Sequence record: KU726251.1 | Direction: 5' to 3' (one strand) | Length of the DNA stretch: 64,000 nucleotides | In this document: piece after piece, positions 1 to 63,594 of the stretch | How the letters are laid out: every line of letters starts with the position of its first letter | How positions within the stretch are numbered: position 1 is the stretch's first letter | Program-made: the position numbers and the translations under genes | Notes under the pieces: model-generated | What the model saw: the letters and a program-made list of their open reading frames with translations, nothing else | Databases searched by the model: none | Told to the model about the DNA's origin: nothing

Positions 1-328
1 TATTAAGATCTTAAAACGCGTGCGGGCGCGCGCGTGATCCTTATTAAGAGATCGTGATCGGACAGACGTCCTGGTTTGGGTACCCTGTGTATTTTTTACG
101 TGGTTTCCCTATCGTGTGTTCAGACCACCACTCGATGTCCAAAACCCATAGCTTCGGTGGCCGCCTCCCTGGACGGCAGACTCTGACAAGTCGACCCACA
201 CCACCAACCCGTCCGGGGACGGATTTTTATTCCAACGACAAGCTCCACGAAAATCCCCGCAGAGGGACTCACTGCTGTGTGACTCACCGGCTCCTGGACG
301 CCTACGCCTCGAGCCGGTAATTTTTTGA

Positions 329-351
329 TTACGTGAGTTTGTTGTTATATG
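329..351 (+). promoter_or_regulatory. TTAC-N15-TATG motif, candidate nvRNAP middle/late promoter
   Basis: TTAC 329-332 and TATG 348-351; same spacing recurs at 941, 2574, 22812 (TGTG variant), 56920 and 63572. Confidence 0.55.
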
Positions 352-930
352 CGAATAGCGATTGACCGCGCCAATGGTCCAATCACTTTTAAACCCTGCA
401 CGCTAGGGCTCCAAGTCCTGGGATTGTTACCCAGGACGCTTTTTCGAAAATACCTACCGTGGTGTCTTCGACAAAGCGCAATCTAACACTGCGTGATTTA
501 TTATGTTCTGGAAAACTTTCGCCGTGGAACAGAACCGGTGAGCGTCGGCGGGGATTCCGACAATCACCACCAATTCAGGTACTCGGTAAATAACCGACCT
601 GCCGACGGTGCTACGTCGGGCGTAGTTCGGTTTGCGAGAGTGTCGAGAAAGTCGACTGCGCACCCATGACAAAATCCGAGTTGACCGTGGCAGCGCCAGA
701 GGACTGGGCAGCGGAGAGACGTCGTTGAACTTACCTCCGATAGTTATCGCTGATTCCGCTCTGGCGTCGGGCCAAAACTGATTCGAATTCGGCGTTGCGT
801 CGAAAAGGGGTCTGCGTGTAGAACCGCAGACTTGGGGGATGATCTCCAGACGGAGGTGGTCAAAATATCTTGCCGGCTCGGAACAGACGAGAGGGGTGGG
901 TACTCCCGTTGAGAAACGACGGTACCTGGC
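351..930 (+). ncRNA. candidate large structured non-coding RNA
   Basis: No credible ORF; stems 415-422/430-437, 544-548/557-561, 602-607/614-619, 642-646/652-656, 693-701/759-767, 810-816/825-831; begins at a promoter motif. Confidence 0.45.
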
Positions 931-940
931 TGATTAAAAT

Positions 941-963
941 TTACAGATTCTGCGTGAGGTATG
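941..963 (+). promoter_or_regulatory. AAAATTTAC-N15-TATG candidate promoter
   Basis: TTAC 941-944, TATG 960-963, upstream of the RBS of 988. Confidence 0.55.
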
Positions 964-987
964 ATAAACCAAACGGAGAATTAAATC

Positions 988-1479
988 ATGACCACGATAG
1001 CGTTCGATGGAAAAGTCTTAGCTGCTGACGGCCAGTTAACCCGTGGGTCGAATATCTGCAACCTGAATACCCAGAAGTTATTCGTCTGTCCTCCTGACGA
1101 GGAGTGGTGGATTACCGGTGAACGAATTGTGGTGTTCGGGGTAAGCGGCGACATCACAGGACAATTGGCCCTGCTGGAAACGGTCCGCTTGAGACCCGGC
1201 TACAAGGGGTTAACACAAAGCTCGCAGTTACCTGCGAAGATGGATTTTACTTTCCTGATGCTTCTGGCCTCAGGGAAAGCGATAGTCGGTGGGAAGCGTG
1301 AAGACGACGTGTCGTTGTGGTGGAGTGAAGCCACACCACCTCTGGCAACCGGAAGCGGTTACGAGTACGCGTTGGGTGCGATGAAGATGGGCGCGAATGC
1401 GGTTCGTGCTGTTGAGATTGCGTCCGAATGCGATATCTACACCGGTGGTGAGATTAGCACTTACGAACTACGGAGGTGA
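988..1479 (+). CDS. HslV/proteasome-beta-like Ntn-hydrolase peptidase
   Basis: N-terminal MTTIAFDGKVLAADGQ (Thr nucleophile after Met removal) and ATGSG...ALGAM...AVEIA...DIYTGG; GGAG RBS. Confidence 0.8.
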   Translation: MTTIAFDGKVLAADGQLTRGSNICNLNTQKLFVCPPDEEWWITGERIVVFGVSGDITGQLALLETVRLRPGYKGLTQSSQLPAKMDFTFLMLLASGKAIVGGKREDDVSLWWSEATPPLATGSGYEYALGAMKMGANAVRAVEIASECDIYTGGEISTYELRR

Positions 1480-1572
1480 ATCATGCGGGAGTCAGAAGCA
1501 CGCAAGCTTGACCCCATCAATCGCCTGCGATAACGGGGTAGCGCATCCGTATAAACACGTTTAAAGAATTCT

Positions 1573-1648
1573 GGGGGTATGGCGCAATTGGTAGCGCACC
1601 GGTCTCCAAAACCGAAGGTTCGAGGTTCGAAACCTCGTGCCCCCGCCA
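1573..1648 (+). tRNA. trnW: tRNA-Trp (CCA)
   Basis: Full cloverleaf: acceptor 1573-1579/1638-1644, D arm GCGC/GCGC, anticodon CCA 1606-1608, TTCGAAA T loop, encoded CCA end. Confidence 0.95.
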
Positions 1649-1712
1649 CATTTAGCCAACGAATTCAGGTTCAACACAGAAGACACAGATTTGTCAACTG
1701 TTGGAGAACAAC

Positions 1713-1955
1713 ATGAATTTGTACTTGCTAGAACGAACTGACGATATCGGGTATGATGAATTTGATTCCATAATCGTGGCGGCTCCTACGGAGCAAGCTG
1801 CGTGTGCAATTCCTCCCGACTGTGGTCATTGGATGGACTGCCGCTGGTTACCGAAAGAGCGCTGGGATGAAGGGCTTACCCTGACCGTTACTCTTATCGG
1901 CACTACGCACTATCCTGCTGGGACCGTCGTTCATGAATCGTTCAATGCTGGCTAA
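1713..1955 (+). CDS. small hypothetical phage protein
   Basis: GGAG RBS before ATG 1713; MNLYLLERTDDIGYDEFDSIIVAAPTEQAA. Confidence 0.7.
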   Translation: MNLYLLERTDDIGYDEFDSIIVAAPTEQAACAIPPDCGHWMDCRWLPKERWDEGLTLTVTLIGTTHYPAGTVVHESFNAG

Positions 1956-1957
1956 AC

Positions 1958-1975
1958 AGTGGGCTTCGGCCCACT
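1958..1975 (+). other. UUCG hairpin without U-tract
   Basis: AGTGGGC-TTCG-GCCCACT; followed by further paired sequence rather than a T run. Confidence 0.6.
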
Positions 1976-2224
1976 AACCCTATTCGAGCCATGATACTTA
2001 CTCAGATTGTGCGGGTTGATGTCCCGCATGAGCCGGTAGCAGCTCAGACCTACGGTAAACCGATAAATCCGTAGCAGCCAGGTACACAAAGCACCAGGTC
2101 GCTTGTACAGGATGCTGGGTATCTGACCGGTCATAACCTCATTCGATACGAGACACGTTTATGCATGAAATACTCCAGTACATCAGGATGTTGATTTCAA
2201 ACGTCCGGTTCTGGGTATTCAGTC

Positions 2225-2530
2225 ATGTTTGGTTTACAGGCGATGGGTTTTCCCGTAAGGGCCCCACTTACAGACTGGCGTCTCCACGACAACCGTCCCT
2301 AGGGGACAGGCAAGCACCGGCCCATTAAGCCGCCATGCTACGCCTGTAAATCCACAATCTGATAACCGAATGGGATTGAGTTCCCAGTGTTAGGGTGACT
2401 GTGTGTCACCGTAGGCGCGGTACCTCATACGGCCGGTACGCCACGAATGTACGTGATAGCAGGTGGTGCTTGGAGACGCTAAGACCTGACCTTACGGCCA
2501 GGCTCAGAAGAAGAAGTCCATCACCTGTAT
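2225..2530 (+). ncRNA. candidate structured non-coding RNA
   Basis: Perfect 10-bp helix 2233-2242/2341-2350; 9-bp helix 2460-2468/2519-2527; hairpins 2295-2307, 2371-2386, 2394-2410; no credible ORF. Confidence 0.45.
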
Positions 2531-2573
2531 TCAGAAATGAATTTAGGTTAATTATTGGAAGTGGCGAAATCAC

Positions 2574-2596
2574 TTACGTGATAACTTAGTAGTATG
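2574..2596 (+). promoter_or_regulatory. TTAC-N15-TATG candidate promoter for the downstream RNA/tRNA unit
   Basis: TTAC 2574-2577, TATG 2593-2596. Confidence 0.5.
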
Positions 2597-2640
2597 CAAC
2601 GAACAATACCAGAGTGACTTTACGAGGTTACTGTGGTATA

Positions 2641-2721
2641 TGTCGGTGCGCCGGGCAACGTGTTGCCGCAAATAAGCCCGAGGGAGCTGACTGCACTAAC
2701 ACACGCCGGGATGCACCGGCA
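2641..2721 (+). ncRNA. candidate small structured RNA upstream of the tRNA pair
   Basis: 9-bp closing stem 2641-2649/2713-2721 enclosing CGGGC/GCCCG and GCAAC/GTTGC stems. Confidence 0.35.
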
Positions 2722-2730
2722 CCTTACAAC

Positions 2731-2800
2731 GGCTTTGTAGCTCAGGTAGGTAGAGCAGCCTCTTTGAGGAAGGTCGCCGGTTCGAGACCGGTCAAAGCAA
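2731..2800 (+). tRNA. tRNA-like element / pseudo-tRNA with shortened anticodon arm
   Basis: Acceptor 2731-2737/2793-2799, D arm GCTC/GAGC, T arm GCCGG-TTCGAGA-CCGGT; anticodon arm only 13 nt (CCTC-TTT-GAGG); no CCA. Confidence 0.7.
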
Positions 2801-2881
2801 GAGCAGCGAAGTTAGAGGAATTAACACCCGACTCATAATCGGATATTTCGACGGTTCGAATCCGTCCGTTTGCTCGCCCCA
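2801..2881 (+). tRNA. atypical tRNA with CAT anticodon (Met or Ile2)
   Basis: Anticodon loop CTCATAA 2832-2838, T arm GACGG-TTCGAAT-CCGTC, D arm GTTA/TAAC, bulged acceptor stem, CCA at 2879-2881. Confidence 0.7.
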
Positions 2882-2899
2882 TTTGTGTTATCCTTATCC

Positions 2900-3215
2900 C
2901 GAAGGCATTCGAAATAAGACGCGTATCCACACACGGGTCAAGGGTAACACGAACCACTTCCGCGGTCACCGTGTCCATTGCCGCCTACCTGCATGGGCTG
3001 TCCTCCGACACGGTGACTTCGGGCCAACTTACAGGCCAGGGCCGTTTGGGTTTTTCTTACGCATCCATCCAGAGCCACCTCGCGCCCTAGTCTGTATACC
3101 CCTTTTCTGTTCCTGGTTTGCCAACTAAATCAATTAAGCCTGGTGCGTTGCCCTGGGAACAGAAAAACTTATTCGGTTACACACCGAACCCACCCACGAG
3201 GGATATGTCGTGGAC
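2900..3215 (+). ncRNA. candidate structured RNA or long structured 5' leader
   Basis: Two perfect 11-bp helices (2965-2975/3007-3017; 3103-3113/3156-3166) plus hairpin 3194-3213. Confidence 0.4.
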
Positions 3216-3258
3216 TACCAATAGAAGCAGCAATAGTAGAAGTAAGAAGGAAAGCAAC

Positions 3259-4080
3259 ATGTTTACAGTTAAACGTGTGATTGATGGTGACCGCATTATT
3301 ACCGAACATGAAAAAGTTCGTATCGGTGACCGTAAGTCTCGTGTATTCCGCGAGGCGTTAAAGATGCTCGAGAACGAGCGATTCGACATTGTTGTCGGTG
3401 ATGAAAAGTTAGCCCTTAATCCGGGGTTAAAACGCGTTGCCCCTGATGTGCCTGATCCGAACACCATGCATTTGTCTGATTATTGTAGCTGGCAGCAGCG
3501 CCTGTCTACAAGTCAGCTTTATGCTCACGTATATCTAAGGCAGCTTTTCCCCAACCTTATTATCCCCGATTTGGAAACGGTCGAGGTGTTTAACTGCAAC
3601 GCACGCGAGTTTGTTAGCTACGTGCTAGATAATAAGGGCAACGCTATCTTGGTACTGGCGACAAATTTATGTGAACCAGAAGCCATGGATAGTATCTGCG
3701 GCGAACTTGTTGGTTTCGGTACGCCCTTGGAAAAATTAGGTTGGTACAAGCCGTCTCCTGATAGCGACATGGCGATTATTGTCTACACTCAGGAAGAACT
3801 GCAACAAGTCGAATTGGAGCCTGGTCCATCTATCGAGTTCACCGATGTCCAGGAGCAATCGCAGTGGGTTAACGGTGAGTGCGTTGTTACTGTTTTAAAA
3901 GGCGCTCGCCCTGGCGACCGGTCAGTCGATGAACTGATTGGCGCAATGTGCATCGAAGAAGAATCTGGGTACGATCCTGATAACCAGATCAGTGCCGGTG
4001 CGTTGTACGAACTGTTTTATAAAGGCGACGAAGTCTACGTGGTTAACTCTCACGGTAAGACTACCGACGTCCTTCGCTGA
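3259..4080 (+). CDS. hypothetical protein
   Basis: Start moved from 3118 to ATG 3259 (AAGGAAAG RBS); followed by terminator. Confidence 0.75.
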   Translation: MFTVKRVIDGDRIITEHEKVRIGDRKSRVFREALKMLENERFDIVVGDEKLALNPGLKRVAPDVPDPNTMHLSDYCSWQQRLSTSQLYAHVYLRQLFPNLIIPDLETVEVFNCNAREFVSYVLDNKGNAILVLATNLCEPEAMDSICGELVGFGTPLEKLGWYKPSPDSDMAIIVYTQEELQQVELEPGPSIEFTDVQEQSQWVNGECVVTVLKGARPGDRSVDELIGAMCIEEESGYDPDNQISAGALYELFYKGDEVYVVNSHGKTTDVLR

Positions 4081-22805: not shown

Positions 22806-22834
22806 TAAAATTTACGTTAGTGGGACATCATGTG
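22806..22834 (+). promoter_or_regulatory. AAAATTTAC-N15-TGTG candidate promoter
   Basis: TTAC 22812-22815, TGTG 22831-22834. Confidence 0.45.
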
Positions 22835-56916: not shown

Positions 56917-56942
56917 ATATTACGTTAGCCTGAAACCGTATG
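56914..56942 (+). promoter_or_regulatory. AAATATTAC-N15-TATG candidate promoter
   Basis: TTAC 56920-56923, TATG 56939-56942. Confidence 0.55.
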
Positions 56943-62269: not shown

Positions 62270-63582
62270 TGTCGTTTGGTCGGTTACAACAGATGGCGAA
62301 CGGTCACATCGCTAATGCTCGGGGGTTACCGGCTATCGACTACGGGATATTCCTCACGGTACACGGTGCCCCAGTGACGGTGTTGAAGATGCTGTCTATC
62401 ATTCACACCGGTCACTTTACGCGTGATATCTGTTTATTGACACATCTCACCTTGGCTATACCCTACAGCCACATGCGAATGATCACGTCGTCCGCAGAAG
62501 GGGATTTGAAGGTAAAGCTGTTATTGCGTCGTGGACAGAAAATCGCGGGGGTCTTTAACTACCGCGGCATCGTGATAAATAACCGCGACCACAACGCGGA
62601 AACACCGACGATGTTCTTGAGTCAGTCTGATGAGAAATCTATCGCTTTGGTAACATTGGAGCTGATGGATGAGTCGATGTGGTTCCTGCGTAATCGTCAA
62701 GTGGGCGGCATCTACCACGAAACAGATGGGTTAACAGTGGCACGCTCGATACTGGCGGATACGTTGCCGGAAGGGGTGGCTGCAGAGGGGCAGTTGAAAG
62801 GGATTGAATACGATGAAGAAGAACAGCAGGCATATCGGGACATCGTTATACCAGACTCCGAAGACTTCTTAAGCGTGTTTGATTATCTGCAGAACCATTA
62901 CGGTGTTTACAGCAAAGGTATTGGGGTCTTCCAATACCTACAACGATGGTATCTGTATCGACCTTGGGACTCGTTGAAGTTTAATAACACAACGAAGCCT
63001 AAACTGGTCATCTATAATCTGCCTCGTGAACAGGCTGCTCACATTGACCGCACCACTGATATCGCGGGTAATGTTATCTATCTGATTTGTGGCGGCGACA
63101 CCAGTAGTTTGGAATACCGTGACCAGGCCGCGCTTAACCACGGTACGGGTTACCGGGTAGGGTCTGTACGTGTGTTGGATGGGCGTAGTAGTTCATTTAC
63201 GCCTGGCGACATCAGTATGACCACACCTGATAAGTTTGTGGCGCAGGCCGACCCTGCTGCGTATCCAGGCGGCGTGGTTAACGCACCAATCGATCCTGAT
63301 AAACACTTTAGTGATACCGATAAACCGCAGCGGTCTAAACTGGAGATGGGTCTGGGTACGATTGTGCAAACAACCTGGAACCGTTCAACGCACGGCATCC
63401 TATATCCTGGTATGCCAGTAAAATACGTTTTTGCCAACGAGTATGGGGTCTATACCCGCTACGGCACGTTGGTGGGTGAAGTGTTCCAGTCTGCTGTCGA
63501 CGGTCAAACGATGGCATCAGGACGTTATAACACCCAATCACAACTGAGTCTTTGGCTCAAAGATGAAAAATTTACAGCTTAG
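62269..63582 (+). CDS. putative virion structural protein (neck or baseplate hub)
   Basis: GGAGG RBS, TAATG overlap; beta-rich. Confidence 0.65.
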   Translation: MSFGRLQQMANGHIANARGLPAIDYGIFLTVHGAPVTVLKMLSIIHTGHFTRDICLLTHLTLAIPYSHMRMITSSAEGDLKVKLLLRRGQKIAGVFNYRGIVINNRDHNAETPTMFLSQSDEKSIALVTLELMDESMWFLRNRQVGGIYHETDGLTVARSILADTLPEGVAAEGQLKGIEYDEEEQQAYRDIVIPDSEDFLSVFDYLQNHYGVYSKGIGVFQYLQRWYLYRPWDSLKFNNTTKPKLVIYNLPREQAAHIDRTTDIAGNVIYLICGGDTSSLEYRDQAALNHGTGYRVGSVRVLDGRSSSFTPGDISMTTPDKFVAQADPAAYPGGVVNAPIDPDKHFSDTDKPQRSKLEMGLGTIVQTTWNRSTHGILYPGMPVKYVFANEYGVYTRYGTLVGEVFQSAVDGQTMASGRYNTQSQLSLWLKDEKFTA

Positions 63583-63594
63583 TCATCTAGTATG
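63566..63594 (+). promoter_or_regulatory. AAAAATTTAC-N15-TATG candidate promoter
   Basis: TTAC 63572-63575, TATG 63591-63594. Confidence 0.55.

Follow-up and report, generated by a model that had tools for sequence, protein, structure and literature searches.

A conserved, structured candidate RNA gene of about 580 nt at the start of the SEGD1 genome record and in related jumbo phages

To our knowledge, very few large bacterial or phage RNAs with complex folds have been described, namely ribosomal RNA, RNase P RNA, introns, OLE, GOLLD, ROOL and raiA, and each of them has yielded new RNA biochemistry. ROOL RNAs have a mean length of 581 nt and many helices, occur in phages and prophages, often beside transfer RNA (tRNA) genes, and have no known function (PMC5737381; bioRxiv 10.1101/2024.12.08.627333). 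The late promoters of phage phiKZ carry the sequence T(-3)ATG(+1), and its non-virion RNA polymerase (nvRNAP) starts at the G of the strictly required TATG (PMC7598289). Here, we analysed bases 1-64000 of record KU726251.1, Enterobacteria phage SEGD1 (this 64,000-nt stretch is the window hereafter), and propose that positions 351 to about 933 of the + strand encode a large non-coding RNA, about 580 nt long and folded into at least 16 helices, a reading to which we give a probability of roughly 0.6. We are much more confident that 351-933 on the + strand contains a conserved gene for a structured, non-coding RNA. An initial annotation made from the sequence alone had read 351-930 as a structured non-coding RNA of jumbo phages, and the Rfam, homolog, covariation, folding z-score and motif results all supported it.

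Positions 1-3200 of the window were 100% identical to positions 1-3200 of KU726251.1 and 99.7% identical to Salmonella phage SPN3US; SEGD1 is an SPN3US-like phage of the genus Seoulvirus, family Chimalliviridae. No coding sequence (CDS) is annotated at positions 1-987 in the records of SEGD1, SPN3US and SaP7. The full CDS-free stretch measures about 1.8 kb (SEGD1 record positions 238623-239461 plus 1-987) and is cut by the record start; the lack of coding capacity of 351-930 had been recognized correctly at the outset, and the CDS-free extent across the record ends is larger than was noted then. A gap of 1.3-2.1 kb lies at the syntenic place in SaP7, SPAsTU, pEa_SNUABM_29, phiEaH2, pEa_SNUABM_9, pEa_SNUABM_11 and Kwan, and a corresponding gap is present in a 222-kb element from E. 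coli. The window holds a single copy of the RNA element. Within 351-933, the longest open reading frame (ORF) had at most 72 aa, and the longest ORFs of ten homologs varied in strand and position from one to another. Nearly all indels in the ten-homolog comparison were not multiples of three, and the variable columns were distributed over the codon phases as 95/90/94, that is, with no third-position bias. The claim that 351-930 contains no credible ORF was therefore borne out. A 20-codon UUG...UGA frame with a Shine-Dalgarno (SD)-like GGAGGUG upstream, found in most lineages, was treated as coincidental and ruled out: its third positions are invariant, the peptide alters wherever the 3' helix covaries, a +1 C breaks the frame in SEGD1 itself, and the stop is absent in SPAsTU. 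Compared with shuffled sequences, the folding energy of the region had z-scores of -3.31 (+ strand) and -3.16 (- strand), a modest signal that alone proves little.

The evidence that carries the proposal came from comparative analysis. In the base alignment, which comprised ten sequences over positions 1-990, invariant blocks lay between stretches with compensating changes, and RNAalifold predicted 179 pairs, 42 of them with compensatory changes. Three covariance models were built, for 381-513 (5' core), 671-793 (central domain) and 775-938 (3' domain), and all loci were re-aligned to them; the slid control consisted of the same pairs with partners displaced by 1-3 columns. In the 3' domain, aligned over 23 sequences, 95.7% of cells were paired, compared with 84.6% in shuffled and 34-53% in slid alignments, and both sides had changed in 17 of 36 pairs compared with 2-8 in the slid controls, with a covariation score of 0.317 against 0.04-0.075. 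The central domain showed 98.3% paired cells (26-48% slid) and both-side changes in 9 of 20 pairs (0-3 slid), and the 5' core 95.5% (35-54% slid) and 8 of 17 pairs (1-4 slid). Compensatory changes thus stood well above the controls in all three modelled domains. The sequences amount to only about eight independent lineages, so that these figures are strong support and not formal probabilities, and alignments fitted to covariance models lean towards those models. G·U pairs, tallied from the alignment tables, accounted for 129 of 729 paired cells in the 3' domain, 33 of 293 in the central domain and 29 of 286 in the 5' core, a share of 10-18% that would be C·A mismatches on the opposite strand. 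RNAalifold scored -256 on the + strand and -223 on the - strand. The G·U pairs and the RNAalifold result therefore indicate a constraint on RNA of the + strand and not on DNA.

The structural elements described at the outset all exist in the sequence. The 9-bp helix 693-701/759-767 is present in the sequence, was recovered by RNAalifold and covaries, and more than the six hairpins first counted exist. One of the hairpins carries a true GNRA tetraloop, at 911-914. The competing pairings 710-715/755-760 and 712-716/735-739 can likewise be read from the sequence, although the comparison of homologs gave them no separate support. The first RNAalifold run proposed three long-range helices (393-404/540-552, ~566-575/890-898 and 370-373/927-930) that were dropped, as the same bases take part in better-supported local helices and a partner is missing in some lineages. 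No comparatively supported long-range helix joins 351-414 to the rest of the RNA. From G351 to A933 the RNA would be 583 nt long. A GNRA loop with varying N, a variable domain on a conserved helix and a tolerated insertion of 615 bp are hallmarks of folded RNA.

A blastn search with 351-930 retrieved 53 phage records, with identities from 99% down to about 71% over the full length (SPAsTU and pEa_SNUABM_29); in Erskinevirus, Machinavirus and Wellingtonvirus, only the 3' part aligned, at 77-84% identity. An exact-pattern search with the most conserved block, 867-896, found 12 viral and 11 metagenome contigs. The element is common to four genera (Seoulvirus, Erskinevirus, Machinavirus and Wellingtonvirus) and also occurs in metagenomic contigs, so that the collection of homologs from related phages succeeded in several genera; the contigs from the pattern search clustered into 18 real representatives. 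Weak model matches in L034, L042 and L046 (15-21 bits) were dismissed as chance, these contigs having been preselected by an exact 20-nt match. The 3' domain is the universal part of the RNA. Wellingtonvirus has the 3' domain and a weak central domain, and Machinavirus and Huxley-type phages differ in their 5' parts. At the DNA level, the RNA is better conserved than the adjacent HslV-family gene, which blastn could not align in these phages, while the RNA and tRNA regions were alignable. The gene downstream varies by lineage, being of the HslV family, a 191-aa ORF, gene X or others. E. coli strain 98232, a urine isolate, carries the RNA on a 221,873-bp circular "plasmid" (L047 = NZ_CP173450.1:148304-155375), which the three covariance models scored at 87.5, 48 and 76 bits. 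This element shares its gene order with the jumbo phages described here, and the plasmid record is probably the genome of such a phage. The E. coli genomes searched contained no chromosomal similarity to the RNA. In the sister genus Derbicusvirus (Derbicus, CR5 and Phobos), the upstream marker genes are kept, but there is no long gap and no model match.

The promoter-like motif TTAC-N15-TATG brackets the RNA at 329-351 and 941-963, as had been described initially. TTAC and TATATGCGAA were invariant in ten homologs, and the sequence of the 15-nt spacer varies. The motif had seven matches in the window, all on the + strand, compared with 1.96 expected, and none of 100 shuffles reached seven. A relaxed form of the motif gave 15 matches in the first 49 kb, of which six were intergenic although intergenic sequence makes up 13.6%; five of these six lie in the first 2.7 kb. 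With fixed spacing, the motif stands at the 5' edge of the RNA in every lineage examined except the E. coli element L047, and a second motif follows the RNA in 11 of 18 lineages, 62-76 nt past the core block. No sigma-70-like site was found in 1-3400. The invariant TATG at 348-351 marks the 5' boundary of the conserved sequence, and by analogy with phiKZ transcription would start at G351. In SEGD1, the motif appears to represent a real, if rare, class of promoter. Further copies of TTAC-N15-T(A/G)TG, all on the + strand, were located at 22809-22834, 56920-56942, 63197-63219 and 63572-63594; the first of them lies within 68 bp of intergenic sequence and precedes a gene start by 38 nt. The motif at the 5' edge, the second motif after the RNA and the differing downstream genes speak for an autonomous RNA unit.

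The features of the RNA are listed in Table 1. Machinavirus has another 5' part of about 190 nt in place of the SEGD1 leader, and the RNA of Huxley-type phages starts about 20 nt before the terminator-like hairpin. The two hairpins at 505-568 are specific to Seoulvirus and Erskinevirus and absent from the Machinavirus and Huxley-type homologs. A UUCAGGU anchor at the AUUCAGGUAC block was found in 13 of 14 representatives. The variable domain ranges from 26 nt (pEa_SNUABM_4) to 135 nt (the E. coli element), and each version folds with a helix that closes it. Depending on lineage, the stem under the AACUUAC loop is GUCG..G, GCCAGUG, CCAUGG or CGACG, and the stem under the UGUAGAAC loop is GUCUGCG, CCCAGCG or GUACACGG. 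In Kwan (L013:2386-3000) and Wellington (L018), the RNA gene is interrupted by a 615-bp HNH homing-endonuclease cassette, which lies at the 3' edge of the purine-rich hairpin region and about 10 nt 5' of the AUCUUGG block. The ends of the cassette are complementary to one another, and the close relatives L025 and L033 lack it. The insertion of this cassette suggests that the region is peripheral and tolerant of insertions. The hairpin 838-866 exists as two very different alleles among Seoulviruses that are otherwise >97% identical, one in SEGD1, SPLA1a and SPAsTU and the other in SPN3US, SaP7 and SPFM4, a pattern that points to possible recombination within the RNA gene.

Table 1. Features of the proposed RNA and its flanks in SEGD1 coordinates
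Feature	Position	Strand	Observation
Promoter-like TTAC-N15-TATG	329-351	+	Exact match; putative start G351
Lineage-specific 5' leader	351-393	+	Seoulvirus and Erskinevirus only; only first ~8 nt conserved
Small hairpin 394-398/404-408, then conserved GCUCC	394-408	+	Both-side changes in 2/3 modelled pairs
GC-rich hairpin 415-422/430-437 and U5 (440-444)	415-445	+	Terminator scan; resembles intrinsic terminator or attenuator
Hairpin of ~15 bp, U tract in 5' arm	438-477	+	95.4% paired; both-side changes in 6/14 pairs
Invariant CUAACAC as hairpin loop	483-489	+	Invariant in 16 sequences; flanking stems differ by lineage, pairing read by eye
Two hairpins: 505-510/530-535; 537-541/564-568 with 544-548/557-561	505-568	+	RNAalifold, compensatory pairs
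Conserved AUUCAGGUAC block opening variable domain	572-582	+	Invariant in Seoulvirus and Erskinevirus
Variable expansion domain, closing helix 578-587/674-686 conserved	578-686	+	Three compensatory pairs in closing helix
Central domain: helices 688-691/771-774, 693-701/759-767, 706-714/747-757, 719-727/735-744	688-774	+	Covariance model
Invariant loop AACUUAC	728-734	+	Carried by helix 719-727/735-744
Hairpin UCGGCG-UUG-CGUCGA	789-803	+	98.1% paired; 2 pairs with both-side changes
Hairpin with conserved 8-nt loop UGUAGAAC (817-824)	810-831	+	Both-side changes in 4/6 pairs
Peripheral purine-rich hairpin region (GGGGG / CUCC / GGAGGUGGUC), alternative pairings	834-866	+	
Most conserved block AUCUUG.C.GCUCGGAA(C)AGACGAGAGGGG, including hairpin 877-880/888-891	867-896	+	Invariant across four genera
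3' terminal helix 894-895/930-931, 897-904/921-928, 907-910/915-918	894-931	+	98% paired; both-side changes in 8/13 pairs
GNRA tetraloop capping terminal helix	911-914	+	GAGA here; GCGA, GUGA or GGGA in relatives
Conserved GCUGA, then A/U-rich single-stranded tail	929-940	+	GCUG invariant; putative 3' end or processing zone
Next TTAC-N15-TATG promoter-like motif	941-963	+	25 nt before HslV-family gene 988-1479

We lean slightly towards a single RNA of about 580 nt starting at G351 as the primary product. A phage-encoded RNA polymerase would transcribe it from TTAC-N15-TATG and would read on past the hairpin and U tract of 415-445. As a terminator is missing, the 3' end might arise when the transcript is processed in the A/U-rich sequence that follows the stable terminal helix. 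As to function, we tentatively propose, with somewhat less than even confidence, a trans-acting scaffold RNA expressed with the neighbouring tRNA island. The RNA would act in trans as a compact scaffold, its invariant loops CUAACAC, AACUUAC and UGUAGAAC and the block 867-896 could contact a partner, be it a protein, the ribosome or another RNA, its variable domains would be tolerated peripheral expansions, and it might be expressed together with the adjacent tRNA island as in ROOL and GOLLD. This proposal follows from the size and modular architecture of the RNA, its own promoter, the turnover of flanking genes, the tolerance of peripheral insertions and the parallel with ROOL and GOLLD (PMC5737381; bioRxiv 10.1101/2024.12.08.627333). 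A bolder idea, which we consider improbable, is an "ornate" functional RNA class of nucleus-forming jumbo phages that forms a self-assembling RNA or ribonucleoprotein particle or acts as a ribozyme. If true, such an RNA would act on phage tRNAs and mRNAs or on host ribosomes, for example in RNA maturation, protection or traffic in the phage nucleus, and would have its active or contact sites in the invariant loops and the 867-896 block.

Several points weigh against a full-length, independent RNA. The promoter, the start and both ends of the RNA are putative. The terminator-like hairpin with U5 lies only about 95 nt after the start and could end most transcripts, and the terminator scan found no terminator-like site after 445 in the RNA unit and none past 933. 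A leader would fit the arrangement in 6 of 18 lineages, where about 30 nt separate the RNA from the next gene, which has an SD sequence, and contain no promoter. When the domain alignments were joined and searched for covarying pseudoknot or tertiary pairs, changes correlated with lineage drowned any signal, and no long-range or pseudoknot pair was validated. The small number of independent lineages given above belongs here as well. Finally, the RNA is not essential to this type of phage, because Derbicusvirus does without it.

The main rival to the trans-acting scaffold is a leader RNA that would act in cis on the operon behind it, comprising the HslV-family gene, tRNA-Trp and what follows or, in other phages, gene X. 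In this reading, 415-445 would be a regulated attenuator and the remaining RNA would set read-through or alter polymerase, stability or translation. We regard this as unlikely, though the foremost alternative. A hairpin of -10 to -18 kcal/mol directly before a U tract (U5-6) is kept, with a lineage-specific stem, in 14 of 14 representatives, and 415-445 looks like an intrinsic terminator or attenuator as judged from its sequence. The U tract can alternatively be locked in the covarying hairpin 438-477, the 3' end has no terminator, and the downstream SD gene with no intervening promoter recurs in SNU9, SNU4, Huxley-type phages, SPAsTU and SNU29. However, the downstream gene differs by lineage, and 11 of 18 lineages have a separate promoter after the RNA and ahead of that gene. 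The 3' domain is best conserved and covaries, yet it offers no terminator or antiterminator alternative, and 400-750 nt with invariant loops far exceeds known leaders. Gene X was also considered as an obligatory partner of the RNA and rejected, being absent from SEGD1/SPN3US and Erskinevirus. A PHROG 20200-like small gene directly follows the RNA in Machinavirus and Wellingtonvirus, often without a promoter between (L007:3172-3549, L030:10015-10401 and L013:3118-3855). In lineages that lack the second motif, such a gene begins some 30 nt further on behind an SD site; it is missing from SEGD1/SPN3US and Erskinevirus. SPAsTU and pEa_SNUABM_29 have a similarly placed small ORF after the RNA, whose relation to the PHROG 20200-like gene is uncertain.

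A second alternative is that the locus yields two or more RNAs, a short one of about 95 nt (351-445) and another covering about 446-933 that arises by read-through or processing. The terminator-like site at 415-445, the lineage-specific 351-414 next to a core shared from 415 on, and the lack of a comparatively supported long-range helix between these parts would agree with it. We nevertheless judge it rather less likely than the leader: there is no conserved second promoter (the TATG at 502-505 is absent in Huxley-type phages, and its spacing to TAAC varies), and a pointless 45-nt RNA would result from the Huxley-type promoter, which lies only about 20 nt ahead of the hairpin. Moreover, the covarying hairpin 438-477 uses the U tract and therefore requires transcripts that cross it.

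Two further explanations appear very improbable. One is an element acting at the DNA level, which might contribute to a replication origin, serve as a packaging site or form cruciforms within the 1.8 kb of non-coding sequence; the region does lie about 350 bp downstream of a 100-170-bp AT-only stretch flanked by GC-rich repeats and resembling an unwinding element, but the 10-18% of G·U among paired cells is a strand-specific pairing constraint, GNRA loops and covarying stems are RNA features, and the promoter-like motif points into the element. The other is a highly diverged member of a known family (ROOL, GOLLD, group I/II intron, RNase P RNA, tmRNA or 6S) missed by Rfam, for which the length of about 580 nt and the phage tRNA neighbourhood as in ROOL and GOLLD (PMC5737381; bioRxiv 10.1101/2024.12.08.627333) would speak. 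Against it, cmscan with Rfam 15 over window positions 1-4000 at E <= 10 returned only tRNAs and three chance-level matches, and a gathering-score scan of eight homologous loci returned tRNAs only; the ROOL (RF03087) and GOLLD (RF01998) covariance models had no match in either scan. Counting scans at both thresholds, the window and 11 loci contained no family beyond tRNAs, so that no known family was matched. A group I/II intron was rejected with no Rfam match and no exons flanking the RNA, the flanks being another small RNA unit and a promoter, and RNase P RNA, tmRNA and 6S were rejected with no Rfam match, no tmRNA found by ARAGORN and no similarity to any E. coli chromosome. Likenesses seen by eye (T-box sequence, 23S sarcin-ricin loop, RNase P conserved regions, 16S 3' tail) are words of 7-8 nt at chance level, at positions unconserved across lineages, and the T-box and RNase P Rfam models were unmatched. 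A decayed or unannotated protein-coding gene is practically excluded, since the small ORFs annotated in the homologous stretch of some relatives' records are conserved in neither position nor strand and the indels and codon phases given above do not fit one.

Full-text literature searches found no description of an RNA at the SEGD1-type locus, and a recent review, for phiKZ, only mentions non-coding RNA expression (PMC13282480). With no model match at E <= 10 and no description in the literature, the RNA is therefore filed as a new family within the large structured phage RNAs without known function.

Other elements surround the RNA. An upstream unit at 95-326 opens with TTAC-N15-TGTG at 95-118, invariant in ten homologs, continues for about 210 nt and ends in terminator-like hairpins at 209-231 and 288-326; its covariation is weaker than that of the main RNA, and it is probably a separate small RNA. 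An invariant motif, GCGCGTGATCCTTATTA(A/C/T)GAGATC, adjoins the AT-only stretch (100-170 bp, 10% GC), which is flanked by ACGCGTGCGCG-type repeats. This arrangement was seen at window positions 1-61, L003:2866-3033 and L047:2530-2745, and in Huxley-type phages the motif lies just upstream of the RNA. The motif and the AT-only stretch could serve in DNA unwinding, as an origin or as a cluster of early promoters. Immediately ahead of window position 1, the end of the SEGD1 record (L008:3105-3462 = record 239105-239461) contains a 180-bp inverted duplication, about 90% palindrome. This 358-bp palindrome is absent from SaP7 and replaces the AT-only stretch, and it is probably an assembly artefact. 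The CDS-free block 2008-2724 shares 76-79% identity with SPAsTU and pEa_SNUABM_29, shows no codon periodicity, has indels that are not multiples of three and 16 predicted pairs with compensatory changes, and carries TTAC-N15-TATG at 2574-2596 and 2620-2642; it may be another non-coding RNA. The tRNA-like genes 2731-2800 and 2803-2874 scored above the Rfam tRNA threshold and were not called by ARAGORN. The first lacks most of its anticodon loop, and the second (anticodon CAU) is 90.6% identical to the annotated tRNA-Ile of the E. coli 222-kb element. Relatives have intact tRNA arrays at the position of 2731-2874.

This work adds an RNA family found so far in nucleus-forming Enterobacterales jumbo phages and one related 222-kb E. 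coli element. The host phages include the genetically tractable model SPN3US on Salmonella, which makes the function of the RNA experimentally approachable. It would be the first conserved non-coding gene, together with a conserved promoter type, for the SPN3US-like phage group, and the 3-kb "RNA island" with which these genome records begin is flagged as under-annotated as a whole.

Comparison with known systems places the RNA as follows. ColE1 RNA II is a replication primer, and the SEGD1-type RNA resembles it as a structured transcript of about 550 nt near an AT-rich element that is possibly origin-like; in contrast to RNA II, the AT-rich element is upstream of the promoter and not at the 3' end of the RNA, and there is no sign of hybrid formation. 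Attenuators and leader RNAs, such as riboswitch leaders and the put RNA of HK022, also have a terminator-like hairpin and U tract soon after the start, and the SEGD1-type RNA likewise abuts downstream genes without a terminator. However, it is 5-10 times larger, the downstream genes are unconserved, and a separate promoter follows in most lineages. The late units of phiKZ transcribed by nvRNAP share TATG at the putative start and the absence of a host-type promoter, but their promoters have no conserved upstream element, whereas TTAC stands exactly 15 nt upstream here. The parallel with ROOL and GOLLD drawn in the initial annotation held for size and genomic habit and did not extend to homology. 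The 583 nt and at least 16 helices resemble ROOL in size only. The location in phages near tRNAs is also shared (tRNA-Trp at 1573-1648 and the tRNA-like genes at 2731-2874 here), and relatives carry tRNA arrays downstream of the RNA. ROOL is found mainly in Firmicutes and rumen phages and has few invariant stretches, whereas the SEGD1-type RNA belongs to Enterobacterales jumbo phages and has many. ROOL assembles itself into a homo-oligomeric cage; the words GAAUUC and GGUACC, the self-complementary candidates for such assembly in the SEGD1-type RNA, are unconserved across lineages. Compared with GOLLD, the SEGD1-type RNA is shorter and has no tRNA embedded. With both GOLLD and ROOL it shares a conserved 3' part and a variable 5' part, the 3' domain being universal among the homologs described here.

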